A DNA stretch of 64,000 bases. Source: Rebecca billardiae RCC1528 (taxonomy: Eukaryota > Protista > Haptophyta). Numbering within the stretch: position 1 is the first letter of the stretch; each line of letters starts with the position of its first letter. The translations under genes were made by a program, and so were the position numbers. The notes below the pieces were generated by a model that made no database searches, was not told where the DNA came from, and was given only the letters and a program-made list of their open reading frames with translations. Positions 5,105 through 64,000 of the stretch are shown piece after piece. The stretch covers positions 62,001-126,000 of the forward strand of contig OZ251251.1 of the NCBI GenBank assembly GCA_965240325.2, given 5' to 3'.

Positions 5105-6532
5105 TCAGCGCAGCCCACAGCGCAGGGGCGGCAGCTGCACCACGCGCTGCGGCATTGGCTGCTCTCCGCGATCGTTGCCCACGCCCAGGCCGAGCGCGCC
5201 CACATGTGCGCCGCACCCGTGCACGCCGCCGTCCGCTGTGACGCAGAGGGCGTGGGAGAGGCCAAGCGAGCAGTCGAGCACGCGCGCATGCGCGAGGCCC
5301 TCCACCCGCTCGGGCAGCAGCGCGCAATCCACTTGGTCCCCCAGCCCCAGCTGGCCTTTGTAGTTGAACCCAAACGTGTGCACGCTGCCGTCCGCGCACA
5401 CCACCGCGCTGGTGTAAGAGCCCGCGCTGGCGCGCACGGCACGCATGCCGCCCAGTGCTTCGATGCGCGTAGGCACCAAGCGATTGGTCACGTCATCGTG
5501 GCCGAGCGCGCCACGAGAGCCGTCTCCGAAGGAGTGCACGCCGCCCGCTGCGTCCACCACCAGGCTGTGCTCGTAGCCAGCGCTCACGTGCACGGCGCGC
5601 ACGCCGTCCAGCGCCTCAATGCGCAGTGACGTGTGCTGCGCCTGCCAGTCGCCGTGGCCAAGGCGGCCGTACACGCCGTCGCCGCATGCGTACACGGCGC
5701 CGCACGCCGTGAGCAGCAGCGTGTGCCGGCCGCCCGCCGCCACGCCGCCAACGCGCACGCCGTCCAGCGCCTCGATGCGCGTCGGCTGCAGCCGGTCCTT
5801 CTTGTTGCCGTGGCCGAGCTGGCCTTGGCTGTTGTAACCCCAGCTGTACGCCGCGCCACCAGCCGTGAGCGCGAGGCTGTGGTCGTCGCCAGCGCTTATG
5901 CCGACGACGAGCTCCGCGCCCAGCGCCGCCACCTGCACGAACGCCCGTCGCTCAGCCTTGTCGCCCACGCCCAGCTGGCCGTAGTCGTTGCTGCCGCACG
6001 CGTACACGGCGCCCGCCTCGCTCAGCACGAGCAGGTGAGTGCCGCCGGCCGCCACTGCACGCACGCGCACTGCCACCAGCGAGCTTACGCGCGCCGGCAC
6101 GAGCACGGCCGTCTCCATGCTGAGCTCGGGATGGCCCAGCGGTGCGCCGCATGTGTGCACGCCGCCGGCACCGTCAACAAAGGCGGAGAAGCCCATGCCA
6201 AAGGTTGGGCTGGCGGACGCGACGTGCGCGTGCGCGTGAGCTAGATCGGGGATGCGCTCGCGCGCGAACAGATCCTCCGCCCACGTGGACACGCCCGCGG
6301 GCAGGGCCGCCGGCAGCGCGACCTCGTGCCCACGCGCGCGCGCGCGCTCGCGCAGCGCGTGCTCGAGCGGCGCGCCGCGGAAGAGGCGCGCGGCGGCGTT
6401 GGCGGCGACGAGGTCGCGCACGTCATCGAGGTGGACGAGGATGCGCGCGATCAGCTCGGGCGGCAGGGCGGTTAGCCGCACCGCCGCCGCTGCCGAGCGC
6501 GCCTGGGTACGCGCGCGCGTCGTCGGCGCCAT
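5105..6532 (-). CDS. F-box-like + 7x RCC1-repeat protein, copy 1 (475 aa)
   Basis: Starts at the family ATG (MAPTTR). F-box-like LTALPPELIARILVHLDDVRDL; repeats of AG..H.L.L...G.VY..G.N..GQLG.G; ends LPPLRCGLR. The upstream ORF extension is spacer read-through. Confidence 0.9.
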   Translation of the reverse strand: MAPTTRARTQARSAAAAVRLTALPPELIARILVHLDDVRDLVAANAAARLFRGAPLEHALRERARARGHEVALPAALPAGVSTWAEDLFARERIPDLAHAHAHVASASPTFGMGFSAFVDGAGGVHTCGAPLGHPELSMETAVLVPARVSSLVAVRVRAVAAGGTHLLVLSEAGAVYACGSNDYGQLGVGDKAERRAFVQVAALGAELVVGISAGDDHSLALTAGGAAYSWGYNSQGQLGHGNKKDRLQPTRIEALDGVRVGGVAAGGRHTLLLTACGAVYACGDGVYGRLGHGDWQAQHTSLRIEALDGVRAVHVSAGYEHSLVVDAAGGVHSFGDGSRGALGHDDVTNRLVPTRIEALGGMRAVRASAGSYTSAVVCADGSVHTFGFNYKGQLGLGDQVDCALLPERVEGLAHARVLDCSLGLSHALCVTADGGVHGCGAHVGALGLGVGNDRGEQPMPQRVVQLPPLRCGLR

Positions 6533-7002
6533 GCTTGTTGCCCACGCCGGCCGACACGACGACGGTTGCCGACTTCGTCCCGAACTCATCAGGCGACTGG
6601 GAGGACACAGACTCATCCGCCGTATCTGAACGTGTACAGTCGTAGTGCCGTATATACTTGTTGTAGAATGTACGACCGGATAGAGTCTATATAGTGCGTC
6701 AGCACGGTGTGCGCGCGGAACCCACGCGCGCAGCTGCTGCTCAATGGCACTGTGCGCATCCATCCAGATGCTCAATCGTCTCACTCTCGATGATGAGTGC
6801 CGCCCCGCTACAATGCCATTGCGCCTTCGGATTGGGCCATCCGATCGTCGGCGCATCACCACGCCACGCACGCGCAGCGCGAGCTCGAGCGCCGGGCTGC
6901 TCAGCACCGCAGTGCTGGCACGCGAGGCTGCATGCGCGGCCCGTGTGCACGCCGCACTCACAAGGCTGCAAATGAGCACCGCACCCGCCACGGGCCGGTC
7001 GC

Positions 7003-8427
7003 TCAGCGCAGCCCACAGCGCAGGGGCGGCAGCTGCACCACGCGCTGCGGCGATGGCTGCTCTCCGCCATCGTTGCCCACGCCCAGGCCGAGCGCGGCCG
7101 AATGTCTGCCGCACGCGTGCACGCCGCCGTCCGCTGTGACGTAGAGGGTGTGACGATCGCCAAATGAGCAGCCGAGCACGCGCACGTGCGCGAGGCCCTC
7201 TACCCGCTCGGGCAGCGTGCGATCCACTGTGTCCCCCAGCCCCAGCTGGCCGAAGCCGTTGTCCCCGAACGCGTGCACGCTGCCATCCGCGCACACCACC
7301 GCGCTGCTGTGACAGCTCGCGCTGGCGCGCACGGCACGCATGCCGCCCAGCGCCTCGATGCGCGTGGGCACCAAGCGACGCGCCACGTCACCGTGGCCGA
7401 GCGCACCACAATAATTGTCTCCGAAGGAGTGCACGCCGCCCGCTGCGTCCACCACCAGGCTGTGCGCCGTACCAGCGCTCACGTGCACGGCGCGCACGCC
7501 CGCGAGCGCCTCGATGCGCAGTGGCGTGCGCTGCCGCTGCTCGTCACCGTGGCCAAGGCAACCAGCATAGCCATGCCCGCACGAGTACACGGCGCCGCAC
7601 GCCGAGAGCAGCAGCGTGTGGCAGCTGCCCGCGGCCACGCCGCCCACGCGCACGCCGTCCAGCGCCTCGATGCGCGTCGGCTCCAGCCGGTGCTCCGTGT
7701 CGCCGTGGCCGAGCTGGCCACAGCCGTTGCTACCCCAGCTATACGCCGCACCCGCAGCCGTGAGCGCGAGGCTATGGCCATCGCCAGCGCGTATGCCGAC
7801 GACGAGCGCCGCGCCCAGCGCCGCCACCTGAACGAACGCCCGTCGCTCAGCCTTGTCGCCCACGCCCAGCTGGCCGTAGTCGTTGCGGCCGCACGCGTAC
7901 ACGGCGCCCGCCTCGCTCAGCGCGAGCAGGTGCGTGCCGCCGGCCGCCACTGCACGCACGCGCACTGCCGCCAGCGCGCTTACGCGCGCCGGCACGTGCA
8001 CGGCCGTCTCCATGCTGAGCTCGGGATGGCCCAGCGGTGCGCCGCATGTGTGCACGCTGCCGGCACCGTCAACAAAGGCGGAGAAGCCCGTGCCGATTGT
8101 TGGGCTGGCGGACGCGACGTGCGCGTGCGCGTGAGCTAGATCGGCGATGCGCTCGCGCGCGAACAGCTCCTCCGCCCACGTGGACACGCCCGCGGGCAGG
8201 GCCGCCGGCAGCGCGACCTCGTGCCCACGCGCGCGCGCGCGCTCGCGCAGCGCGTGCTCGAGCGGCGCGCCGCGGAAGAGGCGCGCGGCGGCGTTGGCGG
8301 CGACGAGGTCGCGCACGTCATCGAGGTGGACGAGGATGCGCGCGATCAGCTCGGGCGGCACGTCGGTTAGCTGCACGGTCGCCGCTGCCGAGCGCGCCTT
8401 GGTACGCGAGCGCGTCGTCGGCGCCAT
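7003..8427 (-). CDS. F-box-like + 7x RCC1-repeat protein, copy 2 (474 aa)
   Basis: Same architecture; starts MAPTTRSRTK. Confidence 0.9.
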   Translation of the reverse strand: MAPTTRSRTKARSAAATVQLTDVPPELIARILVHLDDVRDLVAANAAARLFRGAPLEHALRERARARGHEVALPAALPAGVSTWAEELFARERIADLAHAHAHVASASPTIGTGFSAFVDGAGSVHTCGAPLGHPELSMETAVHVPARVSALAAVRVRAVAAGGTHLLALSEAGAVYACGRNDYGQLGVGDKAERRAFVQVAALGAALVVGIRAGDGHSLALTAAGAAYSWGSNGCGQLGHGDTEHRLEPTRIEALDGVRVGGVAAGSCHTLLLSACGAVYSCGHGYAGCLGHGDEQRQRTPLRIEALAGVRAVHVSAGTAHSLVVDAAGGVHSFGDNYCGALGHGDVARRLVPTRIEALGGMRAVRASASCHSSAVVCADGSVHAFGDNGFGQLGLGDTVDRTLPERVEGLAHVRVLGCSFGDRHTLYVTADGGVHACGRHSAALGLGVGNDGGEQPSPQRVVQLPPLRCGLR

Positions 8428-8926: not shown

Positions 8927-10390
8927 TCAGCACGCCTCAGAGCGCAGGGGCGGCAGCTGTGCCACGCACTGCGGCGCCGGCTGCTTTCCGCCATCGACGC
9001 CCACGCCCAGGCCGAGCGCGCGCGAATGTGCGCCGCACGCGTGCACGCCGCCGTCCGCTGTGACGTAGAGGGCGTGGAATTGGCCAAACGAGCAGTCGGC
9101 CACGCGCGCATGCGCGAGGCTCGCCACCCGCGTGGGCAGCATGCGATCCACTGTGTCCCCCAGCTCCAGCTGGCCGTAGGCGTTGAACCCAAACGCGTGC
9201 ACGCTGCCGTCCGCGCACACCACCGCGCTGCTGCGAGAGCGAGAGCCCGCGCTGGCGCGCACCGCACGCATGCCACCCAGTGCGTCGATGCGTGTGGGCA
9301 CGACGCGTTGGGCCGCGTCGCCGTGCCCGAGCGCACCAATATAATTGCATCCGAAGGAGTGCACGCCACCCGCCGCGTCCACCACCAGGCTGTGCAGACC
9401 GCCTGCGCTCACGTGCACGGCGCACACGCCCGTGAGCGCCTCGATGCGCCGCGGCGTGCGCTGATCCTGCTCGTCGCCGTGGCCAAGGCGACCGTACATG
9501 CCGTCGCCGCACGAGTACACGGCGCCGCACGCCGAGAGCAGCAGCGTGTGGCCGCCGCCCGCGGCCACGCCGCCCACGCGCACGCCGTCCAGCGCCTCGA
9601 TGCGCGTCGGCTCCAGCCGGTGCTCCGTGTCGCCGTGGCCGAGCTGGCCGGAGTAGTTGTAACCCCAGCTGTACGCGCACCCAGCAGCGGTGAGCGCGAG
9701 GCTGTGGTGCCCACCGGTCATGACGCCCACGACGGCTGCACCGTGCAGCGCCCTGACGGGAGCAAACGAACGCCGCTCCTCCGTGTCCCCCAGCCCCAGC
9801 TGGCCGTACTTGTTGTTGCCGCACGCATACACGGCGCCCGCCTCGCTCAGCGCGAGCAGGTGGACCTGACCAGCGGCCACTGCGGCCACGCGCACCGCGC
9901 CGAGGGAGGCGACGTGCGTGGGCAGGCGCACTTCGGGGCTTTCCGCGTGCCCGATGGCCGCGTTCACCCGGTACTCACCTGTCGGCCACCTGTGCTCGTC
10001 CCGCACCTCCTCCTCGCCGCACGTGTGCAGCCCGCCATCCGCGTCCACAAACGCGCTGTACTGATAGCCGGCCGCCACCGGGGATGCGTGCACGCGCGCG
10101 AGCTCGAGCACGCGCTCGCGCGCGAAGAGCTCCTCCGCCCACGTGTAGACTCCGGCGGGGAGTGACGCCGGCAGCGCGCGCTCGTGCCCGCGCGCGCGCG
10201 CGCGCTCGCGCAGCGCGCGCTCGACCGGCGAGTACCCGCCGGGCGGCGCGGCGCGGAAGAGGCGCGCTGTGGCGTTCAAGCTGGCGAGATCGCGTGGCGG
10301 AAGGGGCGAGATGATGCGGCCGAGCAGCTCGGGAGGCAGGTCGTCTAGCAGCGCGAGGCGACGCGCGTGCGCCTGTGCCGTGCTGGCCAT
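8927..10390 (-). CDS. F-box-like + 7x RCC1-repeat protein, divergent copy 3 (487 aa)
   Basis: MASTAQ...LDDLPPELLGRIISPLPPRDLASLNATARLFR (a more canonical F-box). Distinct blades 1-2 with an insertion, family-like blades 3-7, ends LRSEAC. Confidence 0.88.
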   Translation of the reverse strand: MASTAQAHARRLALLDDLPPELLGRIISPLPPRDLASLNATARLFRAAPPGGYSPVERALRERARARGHERALPASLPAGVYTWAEELFARERVLELARVHASPVAAGYQYSAFVDADGGLHTCGEEEVRDEHRWPTGEYRVNAAIGHAESPEVRLPTHVASLGAVRVAAVAAGQVHLLALSEAGAVYACGNNKYGQLGLGDTEERRSFAPVRALHGAAVVGVMTGGHHSLALTAAGCAYSWGYNYSGQLGHGDTEHRLEPTRIEALDGVRVGGVAAGGGHTLLLSACGAVYSCGDGMYGRLGHGDEQDQRTPRRIEALTGVCAVHVSAGGLHSLVVDAAGGVHSFGCNYIGALGHGDAAQRVVPTRIDALGGMRAVRASAGSRSRSSAVVCADGSVHAFGFNAYGQLELGDTVDRMLPTRVASLAHARVADCSFGQFHALYVTADGGVHACGAHSRALGLGVGVDGGKQPAPQCVAQLPPLRSEAC

Positions 10391-10696
10391 CGCTCCCGCC
10401 CCCCCTGCTCCCGCCACGCCGGGCGAGTGTTGGCGTGGCTGGACTCAACCGCAAACGGTCCGGCGCCAGTGGAGCACTCTCACGCTGTCTCCGTGACTCC
10501 GACTCCGTCTCCTGCTCACGCGATCAGACTAGCTGACTCACTCACTCACTGAGACTGCGTCAATCGGGGCACTCGTCGCGCCGAGACTCGGCACGCTACG
10601 AGCTAGAGCAGCGCGGGCGATGACTCATAGCAGTCGTACACGCGGCCACCCTAACAGGACTGCGCGTGAACACCGCACCCGCCACGGGCCGGCCGC

Positions 10697-12121
10697 TCAG
10701 CGCAGCCCACAGCGCAGGGGCGGCAGCTGCGCCACGCGCTGAAGCGTTGGCTGCACTCCGAAATCGTCGCCCACGCCCAGGCCAAGCGCGCCCGAATGTG
10801 CGCCGCACGCGTGGACGCTACCGGCCACTGTGACGTAGAAGGCGTGCACTGGGCCAAACAAGCAGTCGACCACGCGCGCATGCGCGAGGCCCTCCACCCG
10901 CTCAGGCAGCGTGCGATCTATTCGGTCCCCCAGCCCCAGCTCGCCAAAGTTGTTGCTCCCAAACGCGTGCACGCTGCCGTCCGCACACACCACAGCGCTG
11001 GTGCAAAAGCCCGCACTGGCGCGCACGGCACGCATGCCACCCAGTGCTTCGATGCGCGTAGGCACCCCGCGATTGGCCATGTCACCGTGGCCGAGCGCGC
11101 CGCCGGAACCAACCCCGAAGGAGTGCACGCCGCCCGCTGCGTCCACCACCAGGCTGTGCAAAAAGCCCGCGCTCACGTGCACGGCGCGCATACCAGCTAG
11201 CGCCTCGATGCGAGTCGGCGTGCGCTGCCGCTGCGCGTTACCGTGGCCAAGACGACCGTGCAAGCCTTCGCCGCACGAGTACACGGCGCCGCACGCCGAG
11301 AGCAGCAGCGTGTGGAGGCTGCCCGCGGCCACGCCGCCCACGCGCACGCCGTCCAGCGCCTCGATGCGCGTCGGCTCCAGCCGGTGCGCCGTGTCGCCGT
11401 GGCCGAGCTGGCCTTCGCTGTTGCCGCCCCAACTGTACGCAGCGCCAGCGGTCGTGAGCGCGAGGCTGTGGTAAGCCCCAGCGCGTATGCTGACGACGAG
11501 GTCCACGCCCAGCGCCGCCACCTGCACGAACGCCCGTCGCTCAGCCTTGTCGCCCACGCCCAGCTGGCCGTAGCCGTTGCGGCCACACGCGTACACGGCG
11601 CCCGCCTCGCTCAGCGCGAGCAGGTGGTACCCACCCGCCGCAACGGCCCGCACGCGCACCGCCGCCAGCGAGCCCACGTACGTCGGCACGAGCACGGCCG
11701 TCTCCACGCGGAGCTCGGGATGGCCCAGCGGTGCGCCGCACGTGTGCACGCCGCCCTCCGCGTCAACAAATGCGGAAAGTCTCATCTCGGCGTTTGGGCT
11801 GGCGGACGCGACGTGCGCGTGCGCGTGCGCGAGCTCGAGCAGGCGCTCGCGCGCGAACAGCTCTTCCGCCCACGTGGACACGCCCGCGGGCAGAGCCGCC
11901 GGCAGCGCGGCCTCGTGCCCGCGCGCGCGCGCTCGCTCGCGCAGCGCGTGCTCGAGCGGCGCGCCGCGGAAGAGGCGCGCGGCGGCGTTGGCGGCGGCGA
12001 GGTCGCGCACGTCATCGATGTGGACGAAGATGCGCGCGACAAGCTCGGGCGGCACGTCGGTCAGCTGCACGGTCGCCGCTGCCGAGCGCGCCTTGGACCG
12101 CGAGCGCGTCGTCGGTGCCAT
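10697..12121 (-). CDS. F-box-like + 7x RCC1-repeat protein, copy 4 (474 aa)
   Basis: Same architecture; the ATG lies 95 bp from the left end of the MULE. Confidence 0.9.
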   Translation of the reverse strand: MAPTTRSRSKARSAAATVQLTDVPPELVARIFVHIDDVRDLAAANAAARLFRGAPLEHALRERARARGHEAALPAALPAGVSTWAEELFARERLLELAHAHAHVASASPNAEMRLSAFVDAEGGVHTCGAPLGHPELRVETAVLVPTYVGSLAAVRVRAVAAGGYHLLALSEAGAVYACGRNGYGQLGVGDKAERRAFVQVAALGVDLVVSIRAGAYHSLALTTAGAAYSWGGNSEGQLGHGDTAHRLEPTRIEALDGVRVGGVAAGSLHTLLLSACGAVYSCGEGLHGRLGHGNAQRQRTPTRIEALAGMRAVHVSAGFLHSLVVDAAGGVHSFGVGSGGALGHGDMANRGVPTRIEALGGMRAVRASAGFCTSAVVCADGSVHAFGSNNFGELGLGDRIDRTLPERVEGLAHARVVDCLFGPVHAFYVTVAGSVHACGAHSGALGLGVGDDFGVQPTLQRVAQLPPLRCGLR

Positions 12122-12216
12122 GCTGTTGCCCACGCCGGCCGACTCGCTCGACGACAACGACGGTTGGCGGCTGGTTGCCCGACGCAGGCAGGACGACAGT
12201 ACAGTCATACAGTTTA

Positions 12217-48910: not shown

Positions 48911-50320
48911 ATGGCGCCGACGACGCGCGCCCGCACTCAGGTGCGCTCGGCAGCGGCGGCCGTCCGGCTGGCCGACGTGCCACCCGAGCTGATCGCGCGC
49001 ATCATCGTTCACCTCGATGACGTGCGCGACCTCGCCGCCGCCAACGCCGCCGCGCGCCTCTTCCGAGGCGCGCCGCTCGAGCATGCGCTGCGCGAGCGCG
49101 CGCGCGCGCGCGGGCACGAGGCCGCGCTGCCGGCAGCCCTGCCCGCGGGCGTGTCCACGTGGGCGGAGGAGCTGTTTGCGCGCGAGCGCGTGTTCGAGCT
49201 CGTTCGCGCGCACACGAACGCCGTCTCTGCCAGCCAATGTTCCGCCTTTGTCACCGCGGACGGCCGCGTGCTCACGTGCGGCGCGCCGCTGCGCCATCCC
49301 GAGCTCAGCATGGGTACGGACGTGCTCGTGCCGACGCGCGTGAGCTCGCTGGGGGTGGTACGCGTGCGCGCCGTGGCAGCCGGTGGTAGGTACCTGCTCG
49401 CGCTGAGCGAGGCGGGTGCCGTGTACGCGTGTGGCCGCAACGGCTACGGCCAGCTGGGCGTGGGCGACAAGGCTGAGCGACGGGCGTTCGTTCAGGTGGC
49501 GGCGCTGGGCGCACAGCTCGTCGTCGGCATCAGCGCGGGTGATCGCCATAGCCTCGTGCTGGCGGCTGCGGGTGCGGCGTACAGCTGGGGCGACAACCGC
49601 TTAGGCCAGCTCGGCCACGGCGACACTGAGCGCCGGCTGCAGCCGACGCGCATCGAGGCGCTGGACGGCGTGCGCGTGGGCGGCATGGCTGTGGGCGGCT
49701 GGCACACGCTGCTGCTCTCGGCGTGCGGCGCCGTGTACTCGTGCGGTGACGGCTTGTACGGCCGCCTTGGCCACGGCGACTGGCAGGCGCAGCACACGCC
49801 ACTGCGCATTGAGGCGCTGGACGGCATGCGCGCCGTGCACGTGAGCGCGGGCAACGAGCACAGCCTGGTGATGGACGCAGCGGGCGGCGTGCACTCCTTC
49901 GGGTACGGTGGCCGTGGCGCGCTCGGCCACGGTGACGTGGCCAATCGCTTGGTTCCTACGCGCATCGAAGCACTGGGCGGCATGCGTGCAGTGCGCGCCA
50001 GCGCGGGCTGTCACAGCAGCGCGGTGGTGTGCGCGGACGGCAGCGTGCACGCGTTTGGGAGCAACAGAAGTGGCCATCTGGGGCTGGGGGACACAGTGGA
50101 TCGCATGCTGCCCACGCGGGTGGCGAGCCTCGCGCATGCCCGCGTGCTCGACTGCTCACTGGGTCAAGCCTACGCCCTCTGTGTCACAGCGGTTGGCTGC
50201 GTGCACGCGTGCGGCCGACATTCGGGCGCGTTTGGCCTGGGCGTGGGCATCGATGGCGGAGAGCAGCCGACGCCGCAGCACGTGGCACAGCTGCCGCCCC
50301 TGCGCTGTGGGCTGCGCTGA
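48911..50320 (+). CDS. F-box-like + 7x RCC1-repeat protein, copy 8 (469 aa)
   Basis: Same architecture with a shorter blade-1 loop; first gene of the right array. Confidence 0.9.
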   Translation: MAPTTRARTQVRSAAAAVRLADVPPELIARIIVHLDDVRDLAAANAAARLFRGAPLEHALRERARARGHEAALPAALPAGVSTWAEELFARERVFELVRAHTNAVSASQCSAFVTADGRVLTCGAPLRHPELSMGTDVLVPTRVSSLGVVRVRAVAAGGRYLLALSEAGAVYACGRNGYGQLGVGDKAERRAFVQVAALGAQLVVGISAGDRHSLVLAAAGAAYSWGDNRLGQLGHGDTERRLQPTRIEALDGVRVGGMAVGGWHTLLLSACGAVYSCGDGLYGRLGHGDWQAQHTPLRIEALDGMRAVHVSAGNEHSLVMDAAGGVHSFGYGGRGALGHGDVANRLVPTRIEALGGMRAVRASAGCHSSAVVCADGSVHAFGSNRSGHLGLGDTVDRMLPTRVASLAHARVLDCSLGQAYALCVTAVGCVHACGRHSGAFGLGVGIDGGEQPTPQHVAQLPPLRCGLR

Positions 50321-51391: not shown

Positions 51392-52816
51392 ATGGCACCG
51401 ACGACGCGCGCGCCTACCCAGGCGCGCCCAGCAGCGGCGACCGTCCGGCTGACCGACGTGCCGCCCGAGCTGATCGCGCGCATTCTCGCCCACCTCGATG
51501 ACGTGCGCGACCTCGCCGCCGCCAACGCCGCCGCTCGCCTCTTCCGCGGCGCGCCGCTCGAGCACGCGCTGCGCGAGCGCGCGCGCGCGCGCGGGCACGA
51601 GGCCGGGCTGCCGGCGGCCCTGCCCGCGGGCGTGTCCACGTGGGCGGAGGAGCTCTTCGCGCGTGAGCGCATACTGAAGCTCGCGCACGCGCACGCGCAC
51701 GTCGCGTCCGCCAGCCCACACCCCTTGAAGAGATTGTCCGCCTTTGTGGACGGTGCCGGCGGCGTGCACACGTGCGGCGCGCGGCTGGGCCATCCCGAGC
51801 GCCGCGTGGAGACGTACGTGCGCGTGCCTACGCGCGTGAGCTCGCTGGCGGCGGTGCGCGTGCGAGCAGTGGCTGCCGGCAGCTTCCACCTGCTCGCGCT
51901 GAGCGAGGCGGGCGCCGTGTACGCGTGCGGGGGCAACGGCTTCGGCCAGCTGGGCGTGGGCGACAAGGCTGAGCGACGGGCGTTCGTGCAGGTGGCGGCG
52001 CTGGGCGCGGAGTTCGTCGTCGGCATAAGCGCTGGCAACGACCACAGCCTCGCGCTCACGGCTGGTGGCGTGGCGTACAGCTGGGGCCACAACAGCCAAG
52101 GCCAGCTCGGCCACGGCGACACGGAGCACCGGCTGCAGCCGACGTGCATCGAGGCGCTGGACGGCGTGCGCGTGGGCGGCGTGGCCACGGGCGGCGACCA
52201 CACGCTGCTCCTCTCGGCGTGCGGCGCCGTGTACTCGTGCGGGGCTGCCATTGGTGGTCGACTTGGCCACGGTGACGAGCAGCGGCAGCGCACGCCGACG
52301 CGCATCGAGGCGCTCGCGGGCGTGCGCGCCGTGCACGTGAGCGCGGGCTCAGGGCACAGCCTGGTGGTGGACGCGGCGGGCGGCGTGCACTCCTTCGGAT
52401 ACAATTATTGTGGTGCGCTCGGCCACGGTGACGATGTGCATGGCTTGGTGCCCACGCGCATCGAGGCACTGGGCGGCATGCGTGTCGTGCGCGCCAGCGC
52501 GGGCGTTTGCAACAGCGCGGTGGTGTGCGCGGACGGCAGCGTGCACGCGTTTGGGAGCAACCACTGTAACCTTCTGGGGCTGGGGGACCGAATGGATCGC
52601 GCGCTGCCCGAGCGGGTGGAGGGCCTCGCGCATGCGCGCGTGGTCGACTGCTCGCTTGGCCACGTGCACACCCTCTACGTCACAGCGGACGGCGGCGTGC
52701 ACGTGTGCGGCGAGCGTTCGGCCGCGCTCGGCCTGGGCGTGGACAGCGATGGCGGAGAGCAGCCGACGCTTCAGCGCGTGGTGCAGCTGCCGCCCCTGCG
52801 CTGTGGGCTGCGCTGA
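51392..52816 (+). CDS. F-box-like + 7x RCC1-repeat protein, copy 9 (474 aa)
   Basis: MAPTTR start within ORF 50834..52816. Confidence 0.9.
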   Translation: MAPTTRAPTQARPAAATVRLTDVPPELIARILAHLDDVRDLAAANAAARLFRGAPLEHALRERARARGHEAGLPAALPAGVSTWAEELFARERILKLAHAHAHVASASPHPLKRLSAFVDGAGGVHTCGARLGHPERRVETYVRVPTRVSSLAAVRVRAVAAGSFHLLALSEAGAVYACGGNGFGQLGVGDKAERRAFVQVAALGAEFVVGISAGNDHSLALTAGGVAYSWGHNSQGQLGHGDTEHRLQPTCIEALDGVRVGGVATGGDHTLLLSACGAVYSCGAAIGGRLGHGDEQRQRTPTRIEALAGVRAVHVSAGSGHSLVVDAAGGVHSFGYNYCGALGHGDDVHGLVPTRIEALGGMRVVRASAGVCNSAVVCADGSVHAFGSNHCNLLGLGDRMDRALPERVEGLAHARVVDCSLGHVHTLYVTADGGVHVCGERSAALGLGVDSDGGEQPTLQRVVQLPPLRCGLR

Positions 52817-53343: not shown

Positions 53344-54771
53344 ATGGCACCGACGACGCGCGCGCCTACCCAAGCGTGCTCAGCCGCGGCGACCGTGCGG
53401 CTGACCGACGTGCCGCCCGAGCTGATCGCGCGCATCCTCGCCCACCTCGACGACGTGCGTGACCTCGCCGCCGCCAACGCCGCCGCGCGCCTCTTCCGCG
53501 GCGCGCCGCTCGAGCACGCGCTGCGCGAGCGCGCGCGCGCGCGCGGGCACGAGGCCGCGCTGCCGGCGGCTCTGCCCGCGGGCGTGTCCACGTGGGCGGA
53601 GGAGCTGTTCGCGCGCGAGCGCATAACGGAGCTCGCGCACACGCACGCGCACGTCGCGTCCGCCAGCTCAAACGTCTTCATGAGAGTTTCCGCCTTTGTC
53701 GACGGTGCCGGCGGCGTGCACACATGCGGCACACCGCTCGGCCTGTCCGAGCTCAGCATGGAGACGCCCGTGCTCGTGCCGACGCGCGTGAGCTCGCTGG
53801 TCTCGGTGCGCGTGCGGGCCGTTGCTGCGGGCGGGATCCACCTGCTCGCGCTGAGCGAGGCGGGCGCCGTGTACGCGTGCGGCGACAACGGCTGCGGCCA
53901 GCTGGGCGTGGGCGACAAGGCTGAGCGACGGGCGTTCGTGCAGGTGGCGGCGCTGGGTCCGGAGCTCGTCGTCAGCATCGCTGCTGGCTTTCGCGATAGC
54001 CTCGCGCTGACGGCTTTCGGTGCGACGTACAGCTGGGGCGGCAACGGCTGTGGCCAGCTCGGCCACGGCGACACGAAGCACCGGCTGGAGCCGACGCGCA
54101 TCGAGGCGCTGGACGGCGTGCGCGTGGGCGGCGTGGCCACGGGCCGCGACCACACGCTGCTCCTCTCGGCGTGCGGCGCCGTGTACTCGTGCGGCAATGC
54201 CAATGCTGGTCGGCTTGGTCACGGCGACGGGCAGGAGCAGCGCACGCCGCGGCGCATCGAGGCGCTCGCTGGCATGCGCATTGTGCACGTGAGCGCTGGT
54301 ACGGCGCACAGCCTGGTGGTGGACACAGCGGGCGGCGTGCACTCCTTCGGGGGCGGTCACGGTGGCGCGCTCGGCCATGGTGACGAGGCCAATCGCTTGG
54401 TGCCCACGCGCATCGAAGCACTGGACGGCATGCGTGTCGTGCGCGCCAGCGCTGGCTATCTCTCCAGCGCGGTGGTGTGCGCTGACGGCAGCGTGCTCAC
54501 GTTTGGGTACAACGGTTACGGCCAGCTGGGGCGTGGGGACACAGTGGATCGCACGCTGCTGCCCGAGCGGGTGGAGGGCCTCGCGCATGCGCGCGTGCTC
54601 GACTGCTCGCTTGGCCTCTCCCACGCCCTCTACGTCACAGCGGACGGCGGCGTGCACGCGTGTGGCTTACATTCGGGCGCGCTCGGCCTGGGCGTGGGCG
54701 ACGATGGCGGAGAGCAGCCAACGCCGCAGCGCGTGGTGCAGCTGCCGCCCCTGCGCTGTGGGCTGCGCTGA
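53344..54771 (+). CDS. F-box-like + 7x RCC1-repeat protein, copy 10 (475 aa)
   Basis: Same architecture. Confidence 0.9.
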   Translation: MAPTTRAPTQACSAAATVRLTDVPPELIARILAHLDDVRDLAAANAAARLFRGAPLEHALRERARARGHEAALPAALPAGVSTWAEELFARERITELAHTHAHVASASSNVFMRVSAFVDGAGGVHTCGTPLGLSELSMETPVLVPTRVSSLVSVRVRAVAAGGIHLLALSEAGAVYACGDNGCGQLGVGDKAERRAFVQVAALGPELVVSIAAGFRDSLALTAFGATYSWGGNGCGQLGHGDTKHRLEPTRIEALDGVRVGGVATGRDHTLLLSACGAVYSCGNANAGRLGHGDGQEQRTPRRIEALAGMRIVHVSAGTAHSLVVDTAGGVHSFGGGHGGALGHGDEANRLVPTRIEALDGMRVVRASAGYLSSAVVCADGSVLTFGYNGYGQLGRGDTVDRTLLPERVEGLAHARVLDCSLGLSHALYVTADGGVHACGLHSGALGLGVGDDGGEQPTPQRVVQLPPLRCGLR

Positions 54772-55245: not shown

Positions 55246-56670
55246 ATGGCGCCGACGACGCGCGCGCCTACCCAGGCGCGCTCGGCCGCGGCGACCGTCC
55301 GGCTGACCGACGTGCCGCCTGAGCTGATCGCGCGCATCCTCGCCCACCTCGATGACGTGCGCGACCTCGCCGCCGCCAACGCCGCCGCGCGCCTCTTCCG
55401 CGGCGCGCCGCTCGAGCACGCGATGCGCGAGCGCGCGCGCGCGCGCGGGCACGAGGCCGCGCTGCCGGCGGCCCTGCCCGCGGGCGTGTCCACGTGGGCG
55501 GAGGAGCTGTTCGCGCGCGAGCGCATCTCCGATCTAGCGCACGCGCACGCGCACGTCGCGTCCGCCAGCCCAACCTTCGGTATGCGCTTCTCCGCCTTTG
55601 TTGACGGTGCCGGCAGCGTGCACACATGCGGCGCACCGATGGGCCATCCCGAGCTCAGCATGGGTACGGACGTGCTCGTGCCGACGCGCGTAGGCTCGCT
55701 GGAGGCGGTGCGCGTGCGAGCAGTGGCTGCCGGCCATTCCCACCTGCTCGCGCTGAGCGAGGCGGGCGCCGTGTACGCGTGCGGCGGCAACGACGACGGC
55801 CAGCTGGGCGTGTGCGACAAGGCTGAGCGACGGGCGTTCGTGCAGTTGGCGGCGCTGGGCGCGGCGCTCATCGTCGGCATACGCGCTGGCGGTGGCCATA
55901 GCCTCGCGCTCACGGCTGCGGGTGCGGCGTACAGCTGGGGTAGCAACTGCTGTGGCCAGCTCGGCCACGGTGACACGAAGGACCGGCTGGAGCCGACGCG
56001 CATCGAGGCGCTGGACGGCGTGCGCGTGGGCGGCGTGGCCTCTGGGCACCAGCACACGCTGCTGCTGGCTGCACGCGGTGGGGTGTACTCGTGCGGGAAG
56101 CCCTATGGCGGCCGCCTTGGCCACGGTGACGAGCAGCGGCAGCGCACGCCGAGGCGCATCGAGGCGCTCGGTGGCGTGCGCGCCGTGCACGTGAGCGCGG
56201 GCCATGAGCACAGCCTGGTCGTGGACGCGGCGGGCGGCGTGCACTCCTTCGGAAATGGTGACGCTGGTGCGCTCGGCCACGGTGACATGGCCAATCGCTT
56301 GGTGCCCACGCGCATCGAGGCACTGGGCGGCATGCGTGCCGTGCGCGCCAGCGCTGGCTATCTCTCCAGCGCGGTGGTGTGCGCTGACGGCAGCGTGCAC
56401 ACGTTTGGGTACAACTACTACGGCCAGCTGGGGCTGGGGGACACAGCGGATCGTGCGCTGCCTGAGCGGGTGGAGGGCCTCGCGCATGCGCGCGTGCTCG
56501 ACTGCTCGATTGGCCAAGCTCACGCCGTCTACGTCACAGTGGATGGCAGCGTGCACGCATGCGGCAGACATTCGGGCGCGCTCGGCCTGGGAGTGGGCAA
56601 CGATGGCGGAGAGCAGCCAATGCCGCAGTGCGTGGTGCAGCTGCCGCCCCTGCGCTGTGGGCTGCGTTGA
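55246..56670 (+). CDS. F-box-like + 7x RCC1-repeat protein, copy 11 (474 aa)
   Basis: Same architecture. Confidence 0.9.
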   Translation: MAPTTRAPTQARSAAATVRLTDVPPELIARILAHLDDVRDLAAANAAARLFRGAPLEHAMRERARARGHEAALPAALPAGVSTWAEELFARERISDLAHAHAHVASASPTFGMRFSAFVDGAGSVHTCGAPMGHPELSMGTDVLVPTRVGSLEAVRVRAVAAGHSHLLALSEAGAVYACGGNDDGQLGVCDKAERRAFVQLAALGAALIVGIRAGGGHSLALTAAGAAYSWGSNCCGQLGHGDTKDRLEPTRIEALDGVRVGGVASGHQHTLLLAARGGVYSCGKPYGGRLGHGDEQRQRTPRRIEALGGVRAVHVSAGHEHSLVVDAAGGVHSFGNGDAGALGHGDMANRLVPTRIEALGGMRAVRASAGYLSSAVVCADGSVHTFGYNYYGQLGLGDTADRALPERVEGLAHARVLDCSIGQAHAVYVTVDGSVHACGRHSGALGLGVGNDGGEQPMPQCVVQLPPLRCGLR

Positions 56671-58138: not shown

Positions 58139-59563
58139 ATGGCACCGACGACGCGCGCGCCTACCCAGGCGCGCCCAGCAGCGGCGACCGTGCGGCTGAC
58201 CGACGTGCCGCCCGAGCTGATCGCGCGCATTCTCGCCCACCTCGATGACGTGCGCGACCTCGCCGCCGCCAACGCCGCCGCGCGCCTCTTCCGCGGCGCG
58301 CCGCTCGAGCACGCGCTGCGCGAGCGCGCGCGCGCGCGCGGGCACGAGGCCGCGCTGCCGGCGGCCCTGCCCGCGGGCGTGTCCACGTGGGCGGAGGAGC
58401 TCTTCGCGCGTGAGCGCATACTGAAGCTCGCGCACGCGCACGCGCACGTCGCGTCCGCCAGCCCACACCCCTTGGAGAGATTGTCCGCCTTTGTCGACGG
58501 TGCCGGCGGCGTGCACACGTGCGGCACGCGGCTGGGCCATCCCGAGCTCAGCATGGGTACGGACGTGCTCGTGCCGACGCGCGTGAGCTCGCTTGTGTCG
58601 GTGCGCGTGCGGGCCGTTGCGGCGGGCGGATGGCACCTGCTCGCGCTGAGCGAGGCGGGCGCCGTGTACGCGTGCGGCGACAACGGCTGCGGCCAGCTGG
58701 GCGTGGGCGACAAGGCTGAGCGACGGGCGTTCGTGCAGGTGGCGGCGCTGGGTCCGGAGCTCGTCGTCAGCATCGCGGCTGGCTTTCGCCATAGCCTCGC
58801 GCTGACGGCTGCCGGCGCGGCATACAGCTGGGGTGACAACGGCCACGGCCAGCTCGGCCACGGCGACACGGAGCACCGGCTGGAGCCGACGCGCATCGAG
58901 GCGCTGGACGGCGTGCGCGTGGGCGGCGTGGCCGCGGGCGGCGGCCACACGCTGCTGCTCTCGGCGTGCGGCGCCGTGCACTCGTGCGGCGACGGCATGT
59001 ACGGTCGCCTTGGCCACGGCGACGAGCAGGAGCGGCACACGCCGCTGCGCATCGAGGCGCTATCAGAAGTGCGTGCCGTGCACGTGAGCGCGGGCTCACG
59101 GCACAGCCTGGTGGTGGACGCAGCGGGTGGCGTGCACTCCTTCGGAGACGGTGGCCGTGGCGCGCTCGGCCATGGTGACGACGCGCATGGCTTGGTGCTC
59201 ACGCGCATCGAGGCACTGGGTGGCATGCGTGCCGTGCGCGCCAGCGCGGGCGTTCTCAGCAGCGCTGTGGTGTGCGCGGACGGCAGCGTGCACACGTTTG
59301 GGTCCAACCGCTTTGGCCAGCTGGGGCTGGGGGGCACAGTGTATCGCACGCTGCCCGAGCGGGTGGAGGGCCTCGCGCACGCGCGCGTGCTCGACTGCTC
59401 ACTTGGCGGTCGCCACACCCTCTACGTCACAGCGGACGACGGCGTGCACGCGTGCGGCGAGCGTTCGGGCGCGCTCGGGCTGGGCGTGGGCTACGGTGGC
59501 GGAGAGCAGCCGACGCCGCAGCGCGTGGCGCAGCTGCCGCCCCTGCGCTGTGGGCTGCGCTGA
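58139..59563 (+). CDS. F-box-like + 7x RCC1-repeat protein, copy 12 (474 aa)
   Basis: Same architecture. Confidence 0.9.
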   Translation: MAPTTRAPTQARPAAATVRLTDVPPELIARILAHLDDVRDLAAANAAARLFRGAPLEHALRERARARGHEAALPAALPAGVSTWAEELFARERILKLAHAHAHVASASPHPLERLSAFVDGAGGVHTCGTRLGHPELSMGTDVLVPTRVSSLVSVRVRAVAAGGWHLLALSEAGAVYACGDNGCGQLGVGDKAERRAFVQVAALGPELVVSIAAGFRHSLALTAAGAAYSWGDNGHGQLGHGDTEHRLEPTRIEALDGVRVGGVAAGGGHTLLLSACGAVHSCGDGMYGRLGHGDEQERHTPLRIEALSEVRAVHVSAGSRHSLVVDAAGGVHSFGDGGRGALGHGDDAHGLVLTRIEALGGMRAVRASAGVLSSAVVCADGSVHTFGSNRFGQLGLGGTVYRTLPERVEGLAHARVLDCSLGGRHTLYVTADDGVHACGERSGALGLGVGYGGGEQPTPQRVAQLPPLRCGLR

Positions 59564-60050: not shown

Positions 60051-61478
60051 ATGGCGCCGACGACGCGCGCGCCTACCCAGGCGCGCTCGGCCGCGGCGAC
60101 CGTGCGGCTGACCGGCGTGCCGCCCGAGCTGATCGCGCGCATTCTCGCTCACCTCGATGACGTGCGCGACCTCGCCGCCGCCAACGCCGCCGCTCGCCTC
60201 TTCCGCGGCGCGCCGCTCGAGCACGCGCTGCGCGAGCGCGCGCGCGCGCGCGGGCACGAGGCCGCGCTGCCGGCGGCCCTGCCCGCGGGCGTGTCCACGT
60301 GGGCAGAGGAGCTGTTCGCGCGCGAGCGCATCTCCGATCTAGCGCACGCGCACGCGCACGTCGCGTCCGCCAGCCCAACCTTAGGTATGCGCTTCTCCGC
60401 CTTTGTTGACGGTGCCGGCAGCGTGCACACATGCGGCGCACCGCTGGGCCATCCCGAGCTCAGCATGGAGACAGCCGTGCTCGTGCCGACGCGCGTGAGC
60501 TCGCTGGCGGCGGTGCGCTTGCGAGCAGTGGCTGCCGGCAGCTTCCACCTGCTCGCGCTGGGCGAGGCGGGCGCCGTGTACGCGTGCGGCTTCAACGAGT
60601 ACGGCCAGCTTGGCGTGGGCGGCAAGGCTGAGCGACGGGCGTTCGTGCAGGTGGCAGCGCTGGGCGCACAGCTCGTCGTCGGCATCAGCGCGGGTGATCG
60701 CCATAGCCTCGTGCTGGCGGCTGCGGGTGCGGCGTACAGCTGGGGCGACAACCGCTTAGGCCAGCTCGGCCACGGCGACACTGAGCGCCGGCGGGAGCCG
60801 ACGCGCATCGAGGCGCTGGACGGCGTGCGCGTGGGCGGCGTGGCCGCGGGCAGTAGGCACACGCTGCTGCTCACGGCGTGCGGCGCCGTGTACTCGTGCG
60901 GCAACGGCTTGTACAGCCGCCTTGGCCACGGTGACGAGCAGGAGCAGCGCACGCCGAGGCGCATCGAGGCGCTGGACGGCGTGCGCGCCGTGCACGTGAG
61001 CGCGAGCGCGCCTCACAGCCTGGTGGTGGACACAGCGGGCGGCGTGCACTCCTTCGGGGGCGGTCACGGTGGCGCGCTCGGCCACGTTGGCGTGTCCAAT
61101 CGCTTGGTGCCCACACGCATCGAAGCACTGGACGGCATGCGTGTCGTGCGCGCCAGCGCTGGCTATCTCTCCAGCGCGGTGGTGTGTGCTGACGGCAGCG
61201 TGCACACGCTTGGGTACAACGGCTACGGCCAGCTGGGGCTGGGGGACACAGTGGATCGCACGCTGCTGCCCGAGCGGGTGGAGGGCCTCGCGCATGCGCG
61301 CGTGCTCGACTGCTCGCTTGGCCTCCCCCACGCCCTCTACGTCACAGCGGACGGCGGCGTGCACGCGTGTGGCTTACATTCGGGCGCGCTCGGCCTGGGC
61401 GTGGGCGACGATGGCGGAGAGCAGCCAACGCCGCAGCGCGTGGCGCAGCTGCCGCCCCTGCGCTGTGGGCTGCGCTGA
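60051..61478 (+). CDS. F-box-like + 7x RCC1-repeat protein, copy 13 (475 aa)
   Basis: Same architecture. Confidence 0.9.
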   Translation: MAPTTRAPTQARSAAATVRLTGVPPELIARILAHLDDVRDLAAANAAARLFRGAPLEHALRERARARGHEAALPAALPAGVSTWAEELFARERISDLAHAHAHVASASPTLGMRFSAFVDGAGSVHTCGAPLGHPELSMETAVLVPTRVSSLAAVRLRAVAAGSFHLLALGEAGAVYACGFNEYGQLGVGGKAERRAFVQVAALGAQLVVGISAGDRHSLVLAAAGAAYSWGDNRLGQLGHGDTERRREPTRIEALDGVRVGGVAAGSRHTLLLTACGAVYSCGNGLYSRLGHGDEQEQRTPRRIEALDGVRAVHVSASAPHSLVVDTAGGVHSFGGGHGGALGHVGVSNRLVPTRIEALDGMRVVRASAGYLSSAVVCADGSVHTLGYNGYGQLGLGDTVDRTLLPERVEGLAHARVLDCSLGLPHALYVTADGGVHACGLHSGALGLGVGDDGGEQPTPQRVAQLPPLRCGLR

Positions 61479-61950: not shown

Positions 61951-63375
61951 ATGGCACCGACGACGCGCGCGCCTACCCAGGCGCGCCCAGCAGCGGCGAC
62001 CGTGCGGCTGACCGACGTGCCGCCCGAGCTGATCGCGCGCATTCTCGCCCACCTCGATGACGTGCGCGACCTCGCCGCCGCCAACGCCGCCGCGCGCCTC
62101 TTCCGCGGCGCGCCGCTCGAGCACGCGCTGCGCGAGCGCGCGCGCGCGCGCGGGCACGAGGCCGCGCTGCCGGCGGCCCTGCCCGCGGGCGTGTCCACGT
62201 GGGCGGAGGAGCTCTTCGCGCGTGAGCGCATACTGAAGCTCGCGCACACGCACGCGCACGTCGCGTCCGCCAGCCCACACCCCTTGGAGAGATTGTCTGC
62301 CTTTGTCGACGGTGCCGGCGGCGTGCACACATGCGGCGCGCGGCTGGGCCATCCCGAGCTCAGCATGGAGACGTACGTGCGCGTGCCTACGCGCGTGAGC
62401 TCGCTGGCGGCGGTGCGCGTGCGAGCAGTGGCTGCCGGCAGCTTCCACCTGCTCGCGCTGAGCGAGGCGGGCGCCGTGTACGCGTGCGGCAGCAACGGCT
62501 ACGGCCAGCTGGGCGTGGGCGACAAGGCTGAGCGACGGGCGTTCGTGCAGGTGGCGGCGCTGGGCGCGGCGCTCGTCGTCGGCATAAGCGCTGGCGGTGG
62601 CCATAGCCTCGCGCTCTCGGCTGCCGGCGCGGCGTACAGCTGGGGCCGCAACTGCGATGGCCAGCTCGGCCACGGCGACACGGAGCACCGGCTGGAGCCG
62701 ACGCGCATCGAGGCGCTGGACGGCGTGCGCGTGGGCGGCGTGGCCACGGGCGGCGACCACACGCTGCTCCTCTCGGCGTGCGGCGCCGTGTACTCGTGCG
62801 GGGCTGCCATTGGTGGTCGCCTTGGCCACGGTGACGAGCAGCGGCAGCGCACGCCGACGCGCATCGAGGCGCTCGCGGGCGTGCGCGCCGTGCACGTGAG
62901 CGCGGGCTCAGGGCACAGCCTGGTGGTGGACGCGGCGGGCGGCGTGCACTCCTTCGGATACAATTATTGTGGTGCGCTCGGCCACGGTGACGATGTGCAT
63001 GTTGTGGTGCCCACGCGCATCGAGGCACTGGGCGGCATGCGTGTCGTGCGCGCCAGCGCGGGCGTTTGCAACAGCGCGGTGGTGTGCGCGGACGGCAGCG
63101 TGCACGCGTTTGGGAGCAACCACTGTAACCTTCTGGGGCTGGGGGACCGAATGGATCGCGCGCTGCCCGAGCGGGTGGAGGGCCTCGCGCATGCGCGCGT
63201 GGTCGACTGCTCGCTTGGCCACGTGCACACCCTCTACGTCACAGCGGACGGCGGCGTGCACGCGTGCGGCACACGTTCGGCCGCGCTCGGCCTGGGCGTG
63301 GGCGACGATGGCGGAGTGCAGACGACGCTTCAGCGCGTGGTGCAGCTGCCGCCCCTGCGCTGTGGGCTGCGCTGA
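61951..63375 (+). CDS. F-box-like + 7x RCC1-repeat protein, copy 14 (474 aa)
   Basis: Same architecture; blades 4-7 almost identical to copy 9. Confidence 0.9.
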   Translation: MAPTTRAPTQARPAAATVRLTDVPPELIARILAHLDDVRDLAAANAAARLFRGAPLEHALRERARARGHEAALPAALPAGVSTWAEELFARERILKLAHTHAHVASASPHPLERLSAFVDGAGGVHTCGARLGHPELSMETYVRVPTRVSSLAAVRVRAVAAGSFHLLALSEAGAVYACGSNGYGQLGVGDKAERRAFVQVAALGAALVVGISAGGGHSLALSAAGAAYSWGRNCDGQLGHGDTEHRLEPTRIEALDGVRVGGVATGGDHTLLLSACGAVYSCGAAIGGRLGHGDEQRQRTPTRIEALAGVRAVHVSAGSGHSLVVDAAGGVHSFGYNYCGALGHGDDVHVVVPTRIEALGGMRVVRASAGVCNSAVVCADGSVHAFGSNHCNLLGLGDRMDRALPERVEGLAHARVVDCSLGHVHTLYVTADGGVHACGTRSAALGLGVGDDGGVQTTLQRVVQLPPLRCGLR

Positions 63376-63900
63376 GCGGCCGGCTCGTGGTGGGTGCGGT
63401 GCTCATCTGCAGCCTTGTGAGTGCGGCGTGCACACGCGCCGCGCATGCAGCCTCGCGTGCCAGCACTGCGGTGCTGAGCAGCCCGGCGCTCGAGCTCGCG
63501 CTGCGCGTGCGTGGCGTGGTGATGCGCCGGCGATCGAATGGCCCAATCCGAAGGCGCGATGGCATTGTAGGGGGGCGGCACTCATCATCGAGAGTGAGAC
63601 GATTGAGCATCTGAGATCATCTGGATGCATGGATGCGCACAGTGCCATTGAGCAGCAGCTGCTCGCGTGGGTTCCGCGCGCACACCGTGCTGACGCACGA
63701 GCTATCTGTCGTACATTCTGCAAGTACGGCAATACGACTGTACACGTTGTACACTGAGGTCGTTCAGATACTGATGAGTCTGTAAGGCAGTCGTAAGCTA
63801 GTACTGTATGCCGATTGTATGGGGGTAATGTCGTCCTCCCAGTCGCCTGAGTTCGGGCCAACCGTCGTCGTCCAGCGACTCGGCCCGGCGTGGGCAACAG

Positions 63901-64000
63901 ATGGCACCGACGACGCGCTCGCGTACCAAGGCGCGCTCGGCAGCGGCGGCCGTCCGGCTGACCGACGTGCCGCCCGAGCTGATCGCGCGCATCCTCGTCC
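63901..64000 (+). CDS. F-box-like + RCC1 protein, copy 15 (5' part; runs off the window)
   Basis: MAPTTRSRTKARSAAAAVRLTDVPPELIARILV follows a standard spacer. Confidence 0.85.
   Translation, partial: MAPTTRSRTKARSAAAAVRLTDVPPELIARILV

Follow-up and report, generated by a model that had tools for sequence, protein, structure and literature searches.

A tandem array of fourteen F-box-like/RCC1 propeller genes with hypervariable positions on one propeller face in the haptophyte Rebecca billardiae

A 64,000-nucleotide stretch of the genome of the haptophyte Rebecca billardiae RCC1528 (GenBank assembly GCA_965240325.2, contig OZ251251.1, positions 62,001 to 126,000; hereafter the window, in which positions count from its first letter) carries 14 paralogous genes, G01 to G14, each encoding an N-terminal F-box-like module followed by a seven-bladed propeller of the RCC1 type. 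Across the paralogues the scaffold of the propeller is nearly constant, whereas two short slots in each blade, lying on the same face, change their residues far faster than silent or adjacent non-coding sites change. It is probable, at roughly 60% in our estimate, that the genes constitute a repertoire of substrate receptors of the SCF (Skp1-Cul1-F-box) type under diversity-enhancing selection. An earlier sequence-only reading of the window had described a library of ubiquitin-ligase adaptors with variable loops in every blade; the present analysis examined that proposal with profile and structure searches, structural modeling, comparative sequence analysis and literature searches.

Copy number and integrity of the array

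In a tblastn search of one copy against the 64-kb window, the full-length matches numbered exactly 14, and no fragment reached 60 aa. All 14 paralogues are intact, intronless and uninterrupted open reading frames (ORFs) of 469-487 aa that run to a stop codon from a conserved start, MAPTTR, or MASTAQ in G03. The 14 intact paralogues claimed by the sequence-only reading are therefore real, and the scaffold strings that it quoted occur in most copies. The minus strand carries seven genes (G01-G04 at 5105-12121, G05-G07 at 30441-35716) and the plus strand the other seven (G08-G14 at 48911-63375), mostly separated by spacers of about 0.3-0.5 kb. Because many of these spacers are conserved and the 3' flanks fall into two types, the repeating unit is the gene together with its spacer, about 1.9 kb in length.

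Fold of the propeller

The propeller was recognized by Pfam above the respective cut-offs, both as an RCC1-like domain (RLD; PF25390, E = 1.5e-69) and as six RCC1 repeats (PF00415, E = 9e-63). By sequence, the closest solved relatives are UVR8 (E = 6.8e-83) and then the RLDs of HERC1 and HERC2, while RCC1 proper is a distant match (E = 6.7e-25) ranked behind them. An AlphaFold2 model of G12, based on the 14 copies aligned with 27 homologues, reached a mean predicted local distance difference test score (pLDDT) of 92.3 and a predicted template modeling score of 0.90; it comprises four N-terminal helices followed by 28 strands that form seven blades. Foldseek placed UVR8 closest to this model (template modeling (TM) score 0.92 by target, 31-32% identity), followed by the RLDs of HERC2 and HERC1 (TM 0.88 for those of HERC2), RPGR, RCC2 and RCC1. 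Pfam, AlphaFold2 and Foldseek thus agree in assigning the domain to the RLD propellers, which have seven RCC1 repeats in seven blades.

The 14 genes share a conserved C-terminal tail, LPPLRCGLR, with a Cys at position -4 (e.g., 59537-59560 in G12). In relatives the C-terminus reads PGL(C/R)xxA, which in some members resembles a CaaX box. A role of the CGLR tail as a CaaX prenylation site was considered and rejected, as relatives have either Cys or Arg there and Cys at -4 occurs in only 6 of 120 homologues; the tail is more likely structural.

Hypervariable slots on one face

For quantitative comparison, the repeat register, and not the observed variability, was used to define 39 slot codons. 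They comprise the two residues between (A/S/L)G and H/S in each blade, the x positions of the motif G-x-N/G-x-x-G preceding QLG, and the equivalent positions of blade 1. The pairwise proportion of non-synonymous differences (pN) was 0.49 in these codons, compared with 0.084 in the other 354 propeller codons, so that, throughout the array, each blade combines a constant scaffold with loops that vary at two slots (AG-xx-H and G-x-N/G-xx-G). The lists of slot residues given earlier were reproduced, with 10 distinct pairs at AG-xx-H of blade 2, 11 strings at CG-xxxx-G of blade 4 and 11 pairs in blade 5; the blade-1 loop occurs in 12 distinct versions among the 14 genes. Slot residues are enriched 7-fold in Tyr and 3.8-fold in Phe, as well as in Cys, Ser and Asp, and the G+C content at third codon positions (GC3) is 0.69 in slots versus 0.87 elsewhere.

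Faces were assigned from the strand order of the AlphaFold2 model and the alignment with UVR8, that is, from topology and homology rather than from computed exposure. Since successive loops of a beta-meander alternate between faces, the loops joining strands 2 and 3 and those joining strand 4 to the next strand 1 share one face, designated face A. Of the sites with five or more residue states, 32 of 36 fall within the 122 loop residues of face A (Fisher p = 1.1e-16), and a single one lies in the loops of the opposite face, which are about as conserved as the strands (0.15 versus 0.13). The proposed clustering of variable sites on one face is thereby supported by strand topology and by the UVR8 alignment alike. 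In the HMMER alignment with UVR8, the slots designated 'a' coincide with W233/R234, W285/R286 and W337/R338, which belong to the GWRHT motifs, and the first position of the 'b' slots coincides with W198, W250 and W302. In UVR8 these Trp and Arg residues make the dimer interface and its salt bridges (PMC7455749, PMC5091643).

Selection on slots and scaffold

Because recombination among the paralogues is pervasive, no site model based on a single tree was used; pairwise, local-flank and blade-partitioned estimates took its place. The ratio of non-synonymous to synonymous divergence (dN/dS, omega) is about 0.6 over whole genes, and both the scaffold and the N-terminal region are under purifying selection. 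Slot dN divided by scaffold dS, however, amounts to 4.13 (bootstrap 95% confidence interval (CI) 3.30-5.20). When one tree per blade was built from non-slot codons only and changes were counted by parsimony, the ratio of slots to scaffold was 4.11, with 335 non-synonymous changes in 34 gap-free slot codons against 375 in about 327 other codons. Twelve single sites exceeded the neutral expectation after Bonferroni correction, and all of them are slots.

As codon bias (GC3 0.87) could depress dS, non-coding DNA was taken as a second reference. In the eight genes with a type-A 3' flank, distances were 0.035 in the flank, 0.108 at fourfold degenerate sites and 0.457 at slot nucleotides; slot nucleotides thus differ 13 times more than the 3' flanks, and divergence in the coding scaffold is three times that of the flank. 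Local comparisons gave a similar picture. In 30 cases in which the 24 codons surrounding a slot are identical between two genes, 32% of the slot residues nevertheless differ, typically through 2-4 nucleotide differences (range 2-6) with 45-93 identical bases to either side.

Within the slot codons alone, dN/dS is 1.42 (CI 1.02-2.01) and dS is 0.57. Where the amino acid is unchanged, codons differ in 19% of comparisons in slots and in 13% elsewhere, and most of the excess of slot dS is therefore probably an artefact of path averaging over codons with multiple hits; for this reason scaffold dS and the non-coding flanks served as neutral references. Amino acids in slots are replaced about four times as fast as the scaffold changes silently, which indicates selection that is positive or enhances diversity, as the sequence-only reading had supposed. 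Scattered variable sites with a dN/dS of at most 1, which that reading had named as an observation that would speak against it, were not found.

Recombination between paralogues

A point added beyond the earlier proposal is that recombination or gene conversion pervades the array. The nearest paralogue switches along almost every gene: G13, for instance, tracks G11, then G08 and then G10, and G04 is nearly identical to G06 over residues 1-330. The pairwise homoplasy index (PHI) statistic lies about 15 standard deviations below its permutations (0 of 300), whether slot codons are included or not. Given that two genes share one slot haplotype, the chance of sharing another is 0.47 for neighboring slots and decays to a baseline of 0.05 across the gene. 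As 72 of the 89 slot haplotypes held in common have identical nucleotide sequences, this sharing reflects descent or transfer rather than convergence. The repertoire has consequently been diversified both by replacement within slots and by re-assortment of blade-sized segments, and as a result of this cassette exchange between paralogues each of the 14 genes possesses a unique combination.

G03 is a divergent mosaic copy. In its first half it reaches only 68-82% identity with the nearest paralogue, its residues 241-330 are 90-97% nucleotide-identical to G12, and its 18-aa insertion in blade 1 sits where an outgroup protein (P0001, 50% identical; L001:153-1703) has a longer one. From these comparisons, G03 looks like an old lineage that has been partly overwritten by gene conversion. 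Silent donor cassettes or template repeats were sought as partial copies of at least 60 aa, of which the 64 kb contain none; no reverse transcriptase turned up in the Pfam scans of 21 long ORFs, although no search was aimed at that enzyme.

The N-terminal F-box-like module

The N-terminal region is strongly conserved (omega 0.46, pN 0.074), with a nearly invariant LPPEL-x-x-RI core. Of 30 family N-termini in an alignment of window copies and homologues, Pfam assigned 22 to F-box-like (best E = 6.9e-08) and 11 to F-box. The profile of this alignment, searched against the sequences of the Protein Data Bank (PDB), found FBXO31 (E = 0.0043), FBXO22, FBXW7 and GID2 as its top matches, each aligned at its F-box; FBH1 was the last of the 14 matches listed (E = 0.98). 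In the AlphaFold2 model of G12, helices occupy residues 25-33, 38-47 and 54-66, and a linker helix (84-100) precedes the propeller. The 87-residue module modeled separately reached a pLDDT of 84, and its nine best structural matches are F-box chains from Skp1 complexes; Fbw7 superposes on it over the F-box and linker with a TMq of 0.54-0.55 across 89 columns. The predicted helices and the PDB fold matches (E >= 0.7) accordingly describe a three-helix F-box fold placed N-terminal to an interaction domain. Judged from profiles and models, the module is probably an F-box. Of the F-box/RCC1 architecture proposed earlier, the RCC1-like domain is unambiguous, whereas the F-box-like part is supported but lies near the Pfam threshold.

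Relatives as a comparative control

The best relative found in a search of 5.8 billion proteins is 50% identical to the array proteins. An exhaustive search of cluster representatives was swamped by giant proteins with multiple RLDs and gave a maximum of 45% identity. Seven metagenomic relatives with the F-box-like plus RCC1 layout (P0014, P0021, P0028, P0032, P0035, P0037 and P0078; mean identity 62%) show a slot diversity of 0.91, compared with 0.33 elsewhere in the protein, whereas three land-plant orthologues of the same layout (P0033, P0034 and P0095) show 0.08 in slots and 0.20 elsewhere. Conservation of the slots under a fixed function, and their hypervariability in an expanded family, would be expected of a ligand-binding face. 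Some land-plant proteins of this layout have been automatically named UVR8-like.

The contigs of P0001 and P0014 carry single copies among unrelated genes and no tandem array. Look-alikes in the language-model Atlas include haptophyte clusters, automatically named, that combine RCC1 and F-box domains, together with a chordate FBXO24 cluster. The genome of the haptophyte Diacronema lutheri has 73.25% G+C and 45% single-exon genes (PMC8379373), which the composition of the present window (66-82% G+C) fits; the paper describing that genome makes no mention of F-box or RCC1 (PMC8379373).

Proposed function and alternative explanations

In the mechanism that we favor, the F-box-like three-helix module and the linker helix would dock on Skp1, and the propeller would present a single face made of 14 loops, two per blade. 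What each receptor binds would be determined by about 39 positions on this face, at which Tyr, Phe, Ser, Asp and Cys are frequent, and the bound protein would then be ubiquitinated. Fast-evolving non-self proteins of viral, transposon or parasite origin may be the most natural ligand candidates. The hypervariability of the face speaks against one fixed partner of the kind that Ran is for RCC1 proper.

Several observations weigh against this interpretation. Of the three window copies scanned whole, two scored 14.9 and 24.0 bits against Pfam F-box-like, below the cut-off of 24.3, and the third gave no match to that family; the third F-box helix carries a Phe where Trp is usual; and the fold matches to the modeled N-terminal module are weak by E-value (0.7 or more), as expected of a query that is short and helical. 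No protein more than 50% identical was present in the libraries searched. Codon bias (GC3 0.87) and gene conversion may have depressed dS, but the non-coding flanks agree with selection. Two results on expression are uninformative rather than evidence of absence: no RNA run was listed for the one gene queried, and the sole DNA sample with any matching words yielded contig scraps of 45-198 nt.

The first group of these observations leaves some room for diversified binders that act outside SCF complexes. The F-box-like helices would then serve as a cap or dimerization module, and the propellers as inhibitors, decoys, scaffolds or parts of another effector; BLIP-II, an RCC1-fold inhibitor, provides a model for such stoichiometric binders. 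Besides the subthreshold Pfam scores and the weak structural matches, this explanation can draw on a search with the N-terminal region alone, which recovered no relatives at E <= 0.001, and on the variety of partners bound by RCC1 folds, as the structural matches include UVR8, a HERC2 RLD2-peptide complex, RPGR-PDE6D and RCC1-Ran. It accounts poorly for the strong conservation of the module and its core, for the clear F-box significance among relatives (6.9e-08) and for best profile and fold matches that are almost all F-box proteins, and FBXO24 offers a precedent for a protein of the same architecture entering an SCF complex. We regard it as unlikely. Somewhat less likely still is that the repertoire serves an endogenous or selfish conflict, such as mating or self/non-self compatibility of the kind seen in S-locus F-box clusters, hybrid incompatibility, or toxin-antidote-like drive of the kind described for young F-box genes of Caenorhabditis. 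Tandem, fast-evolving F-box genes are the signature expected there as well. Young F-box genes are reported to be linked to hybrid incompatibility (PMC11573670), and a text on Caenorhabditis toxin-antidote elements often names F-box (PMC12680543). The array also adjoins transposons, with an element bounded by terminal inverted repeats (TIRs) inside it. Against it, Pfam scans of 21 long ORFs revealed no S-RNase-like or toxin partner locus in the window.

The remaining explanations dispense with selection for diversity. Mutation targeted to the slots, or templated conversion of small patches, with selection only purging failures, would explain why slots differ by 2-6 nucleotides between 45-93 identical nucleotides on each side, why slot GC3 is 0.69 versus 0.87, as for recently written codons, and why the coding scaffold has diverged three times as much as the 3' flank. 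It is nevertheless improbable: donor cassettes, pseudogenes and partial copies were not found in the window, the nucleotide identity of 72 of 89 shared haplotypes and the decay of sharing with distance are what ordinary recombination predicts, and codon differences at the same amino acid are only slightly commoner in slots (19% versus 13%). To our knowledge, no eukaryotic mechanism is aimed at codon pairs every 17-35 codons. Least credible, and disfavored, is a neutral account in which unconstrained loops drift while gene conversion keeps the scaffold uniform, with no recognition function. Gene conversion is demonstrably active and the slot-only dN/dS is just 1.42 (CI 1.02-2.01), yet drift cannot outpace silent sites fourfold or adjacent non-coding DNA 13-fold, and conversion tracts would homogenize slots spaced every 17-35 codons unless opposed by selection. 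Nor does drift sit well with opposite-face loops conserved like strands (0.15 versus 0.13), with conservation of the same positions in land-plant orthologues, or with 14 intact ORFs.

Comparison with known systems

With 14 tandem copies, a slot dN/scaffold dS of 4.1 and an N-terminal omega of 0.46, the array has the features of an adaptive F-box expansion. The F-box families of nematodes, the plant FBX families and the S-locus F-box clusters are likewise large tandem families in which the F-box is conserved and positive selection is concentrated in the substrate-binding domain, and for which a part in immunity or conflict has been proposed. Their recognition domains are FTH/FBA, Kelch or leucine-rich repeat domains. 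The present array differs in its RCC1-like propeller, its strictly periodic two slots per blade, its shuffled blade cassettes and its haptophyte host. For nematode F-box families, positive selection in the substrate-binding domains is reported and an immune role proposed (PMC8120010, PMC5392922).

The same F-box plus RCC1 architecture is found in mammalian FBXO24, which co-precipitates SKP1, CUL1 and RBX1; it also promotes the K48-linked ubiquitination of MIWI and the degradation of that protein (PMC10932545). FBXO24 differs from the array genes in being conserved between human and mouse, with no reported hypervariability; it lay outside the 30 best Swiss-Prot fold matches and was found only as a look-alike in the language-model Atlas, at 0.94. 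UVR8 provides the closest solved fold, and its interface Trp/Arg positions are the hypervariable slots of the array, but it has no F-box-like N-terminus and has not been described as a member of a diversifying array. Conversely, the array genes lack the GWRHT Trp triad of the UVR8 photoreceptor (W233/W285/W337): the corresponding pairs in G12 are FR, GG and SR, and Trp makes up 0.6% of slot residues. HERC1 and HERC2 also use RLD propellers to bind proteins or peptides within ubiquitin ligases, although there the RLD is built into a giant HECT ligase and does not form an exchangeable adaptor, and a repertoire of paralogues is not known for these proteins. Fbw7 and beta-TrCP likewise combine an F-box and a helical linker with a propeller, one face of which binds the substrate; they differ in that their propellers are of the WD40 type and in being conserved single genes with defined phosphodegron pockets.

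Full-text literature searches returned no description of an RCC1 propeller as a hypervariable recognition module, of a periodic two-slots-per-blade design with cassette shuffling, or of such a scale in a haptophyte. The novelty claimed earlier therefore stands in part, as the combination of F-box and RCC1 domains is already known from FBXO24 and from haptophyte database entries, and it is the hypervariable array for which the searches returned no paper. Adaptively evolving F-box expansions are equally known; what appears to be new is the use of an RCC1 propeller as the recognition module in a haptophyte.

Gene coordinates and surroundings

The coordinates of the 14 genes, and of the domains and slots of the modeled copy, are compiled in Table 1. 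Two types of 3' flank can be distinguished in the 250 nt downstream of the genes: type A follows G01, G02 and G09-G14, type B follows G03 and G05-G08, and the flank of G04 belongs to neither. The 300 nt upstream of most copies contain a GC-rich, partly palindromic motif, CAGCTGCGCGCGTGGGTTCCGCGCGCACACC, and a box, ACGACTGTACACGTT. These conserved upstream motifs and 3' flanks may represent a shared promoter and terminator.

Table 1 Positions of the array genes and of the parts of the reference copy within the window
Feature	Position	Strand	Remarks
G01, F-box-like/RCC1 paralogue	5105..6532	-	475 aa, intact
G02, paralogue	7003..8427	-	474 aa, intact
G03, divergent mosaic paralogue	8927..10390	-	487 aa, 18-aa blade-1 insertion
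G04, paralogue	10697..12121	-	474 aa; TIR element ~90 bp upstream of ATG
G05, paralogue	30441..31865	-	474 aa, intact
G06, paralogue	32363..33787	-	474 aa, intact
G07, paralogue	34298..35716	-	472 aa, intact
G08, paralogue	48911..50320	+	469 aa, blade-1 loop shortened
G09, paralogue	51392..52816	+	474 aa, intact
G10, paralogue	53344..54771	+	475 aa, intact
G11, paralogue	55246..56670	+	474 aa, intact
G12, reference paralogue	58139..59563	+	474 aa; copy modeled with AlphaFold2
G12 residues 19-100, F-box-like three helices and long linker helix	58193..58438	+	
G12 residues 105-474, seven-bladed RCC1-like propeller	58451..59560	+	
G12 residues of the 39 hypervariable slot codons			109-115, 130-131, 164-165, 181/183/184, 216-217, 233/235/236, 268-269, 285/287/288, 320-321, 337/339/340, 372-373, 389/391/392, 424-425, 441/443/444
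G13, paralogue	60051..61478	+	475 aa, intact
G14, paralogue	61951..63375	+	474 aa, intact

The TIR element inside the array spans 17.76 kb (12208-29966), beginning about 90 bp upstream of the G04 start codon. Its 406-nt TIRs show 98% complementarity, and a short direct duplication, ACAGTTT, flanks the element; some 50-80 nt past its far end (about 30020-30050) lies a stretch resembling the upstream spacer of G06. The element had been read from the sequence as a Mutator with a giant multidomain transposase. Its inverted repeats are real, but Pfam detected no transposase, OTU or dioxygenase domain in the 13 long ORFs scanned there. Dense imperfect repeats of the GGCGCCCTGCTC type occupy 28480-29050 within the element and, in one frame, encode a PT-like disordered repeat (PF04886, E = 2.9e-08). 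Between the two inverted arrays, an ORF at 47401-49020 on the plus strand matches, at residues 68-114, the transmembrane anchor of PetC, the Rieske iron-sulfur subunit (PF25471, E = 2.9e-17); G08 thus seems to be closely preceded, on its upstream side, by an ordinary gene of photosynthesis. Apart from this anchor and the PT repeat, Pfam found nothing in the 21 long window ORFs scanned; the region 36000-44000, with 78-82% G+C, holds overlapping ORFs of 900-1576 aa on both strands, none with a Pfam match.

Implications

Little is known of how marine phytoplankton recognize viruses or parasites inside the cell, and the family described here is a concrete, testable candidate for such recognition, with a fixed scaffold, about 39 defined specificity positions and a plausible route to ubiquitination through SCF. 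The contrast between hypervariable slots in algae and conserved slots in land plants provides a ready map of the ligand-binding face of F-box-like RCC1 proteins. If the favored interpretation is correct, haptophytes would join nematodes and plants in having arms races of F-box receptors, in their case on a new recognition fold. The array would then also represent a combinatorial library of binders, provided by nature on an RCC1 propeller whose blades each bear two variable patches rich in Tyr, Ser and Asp, which would be of interest for protein engineering. More tentatively, the locus could be part of a genome-wide, antibody-like system in which germline-encoded, recombination-shuffled propeller faces send viral, transposon or parasite proteins to the proteasome; such a system, if it exists, would add to eukaryotic innate immunity a class of receptors that has not been described before, built on the RCC1 fold.

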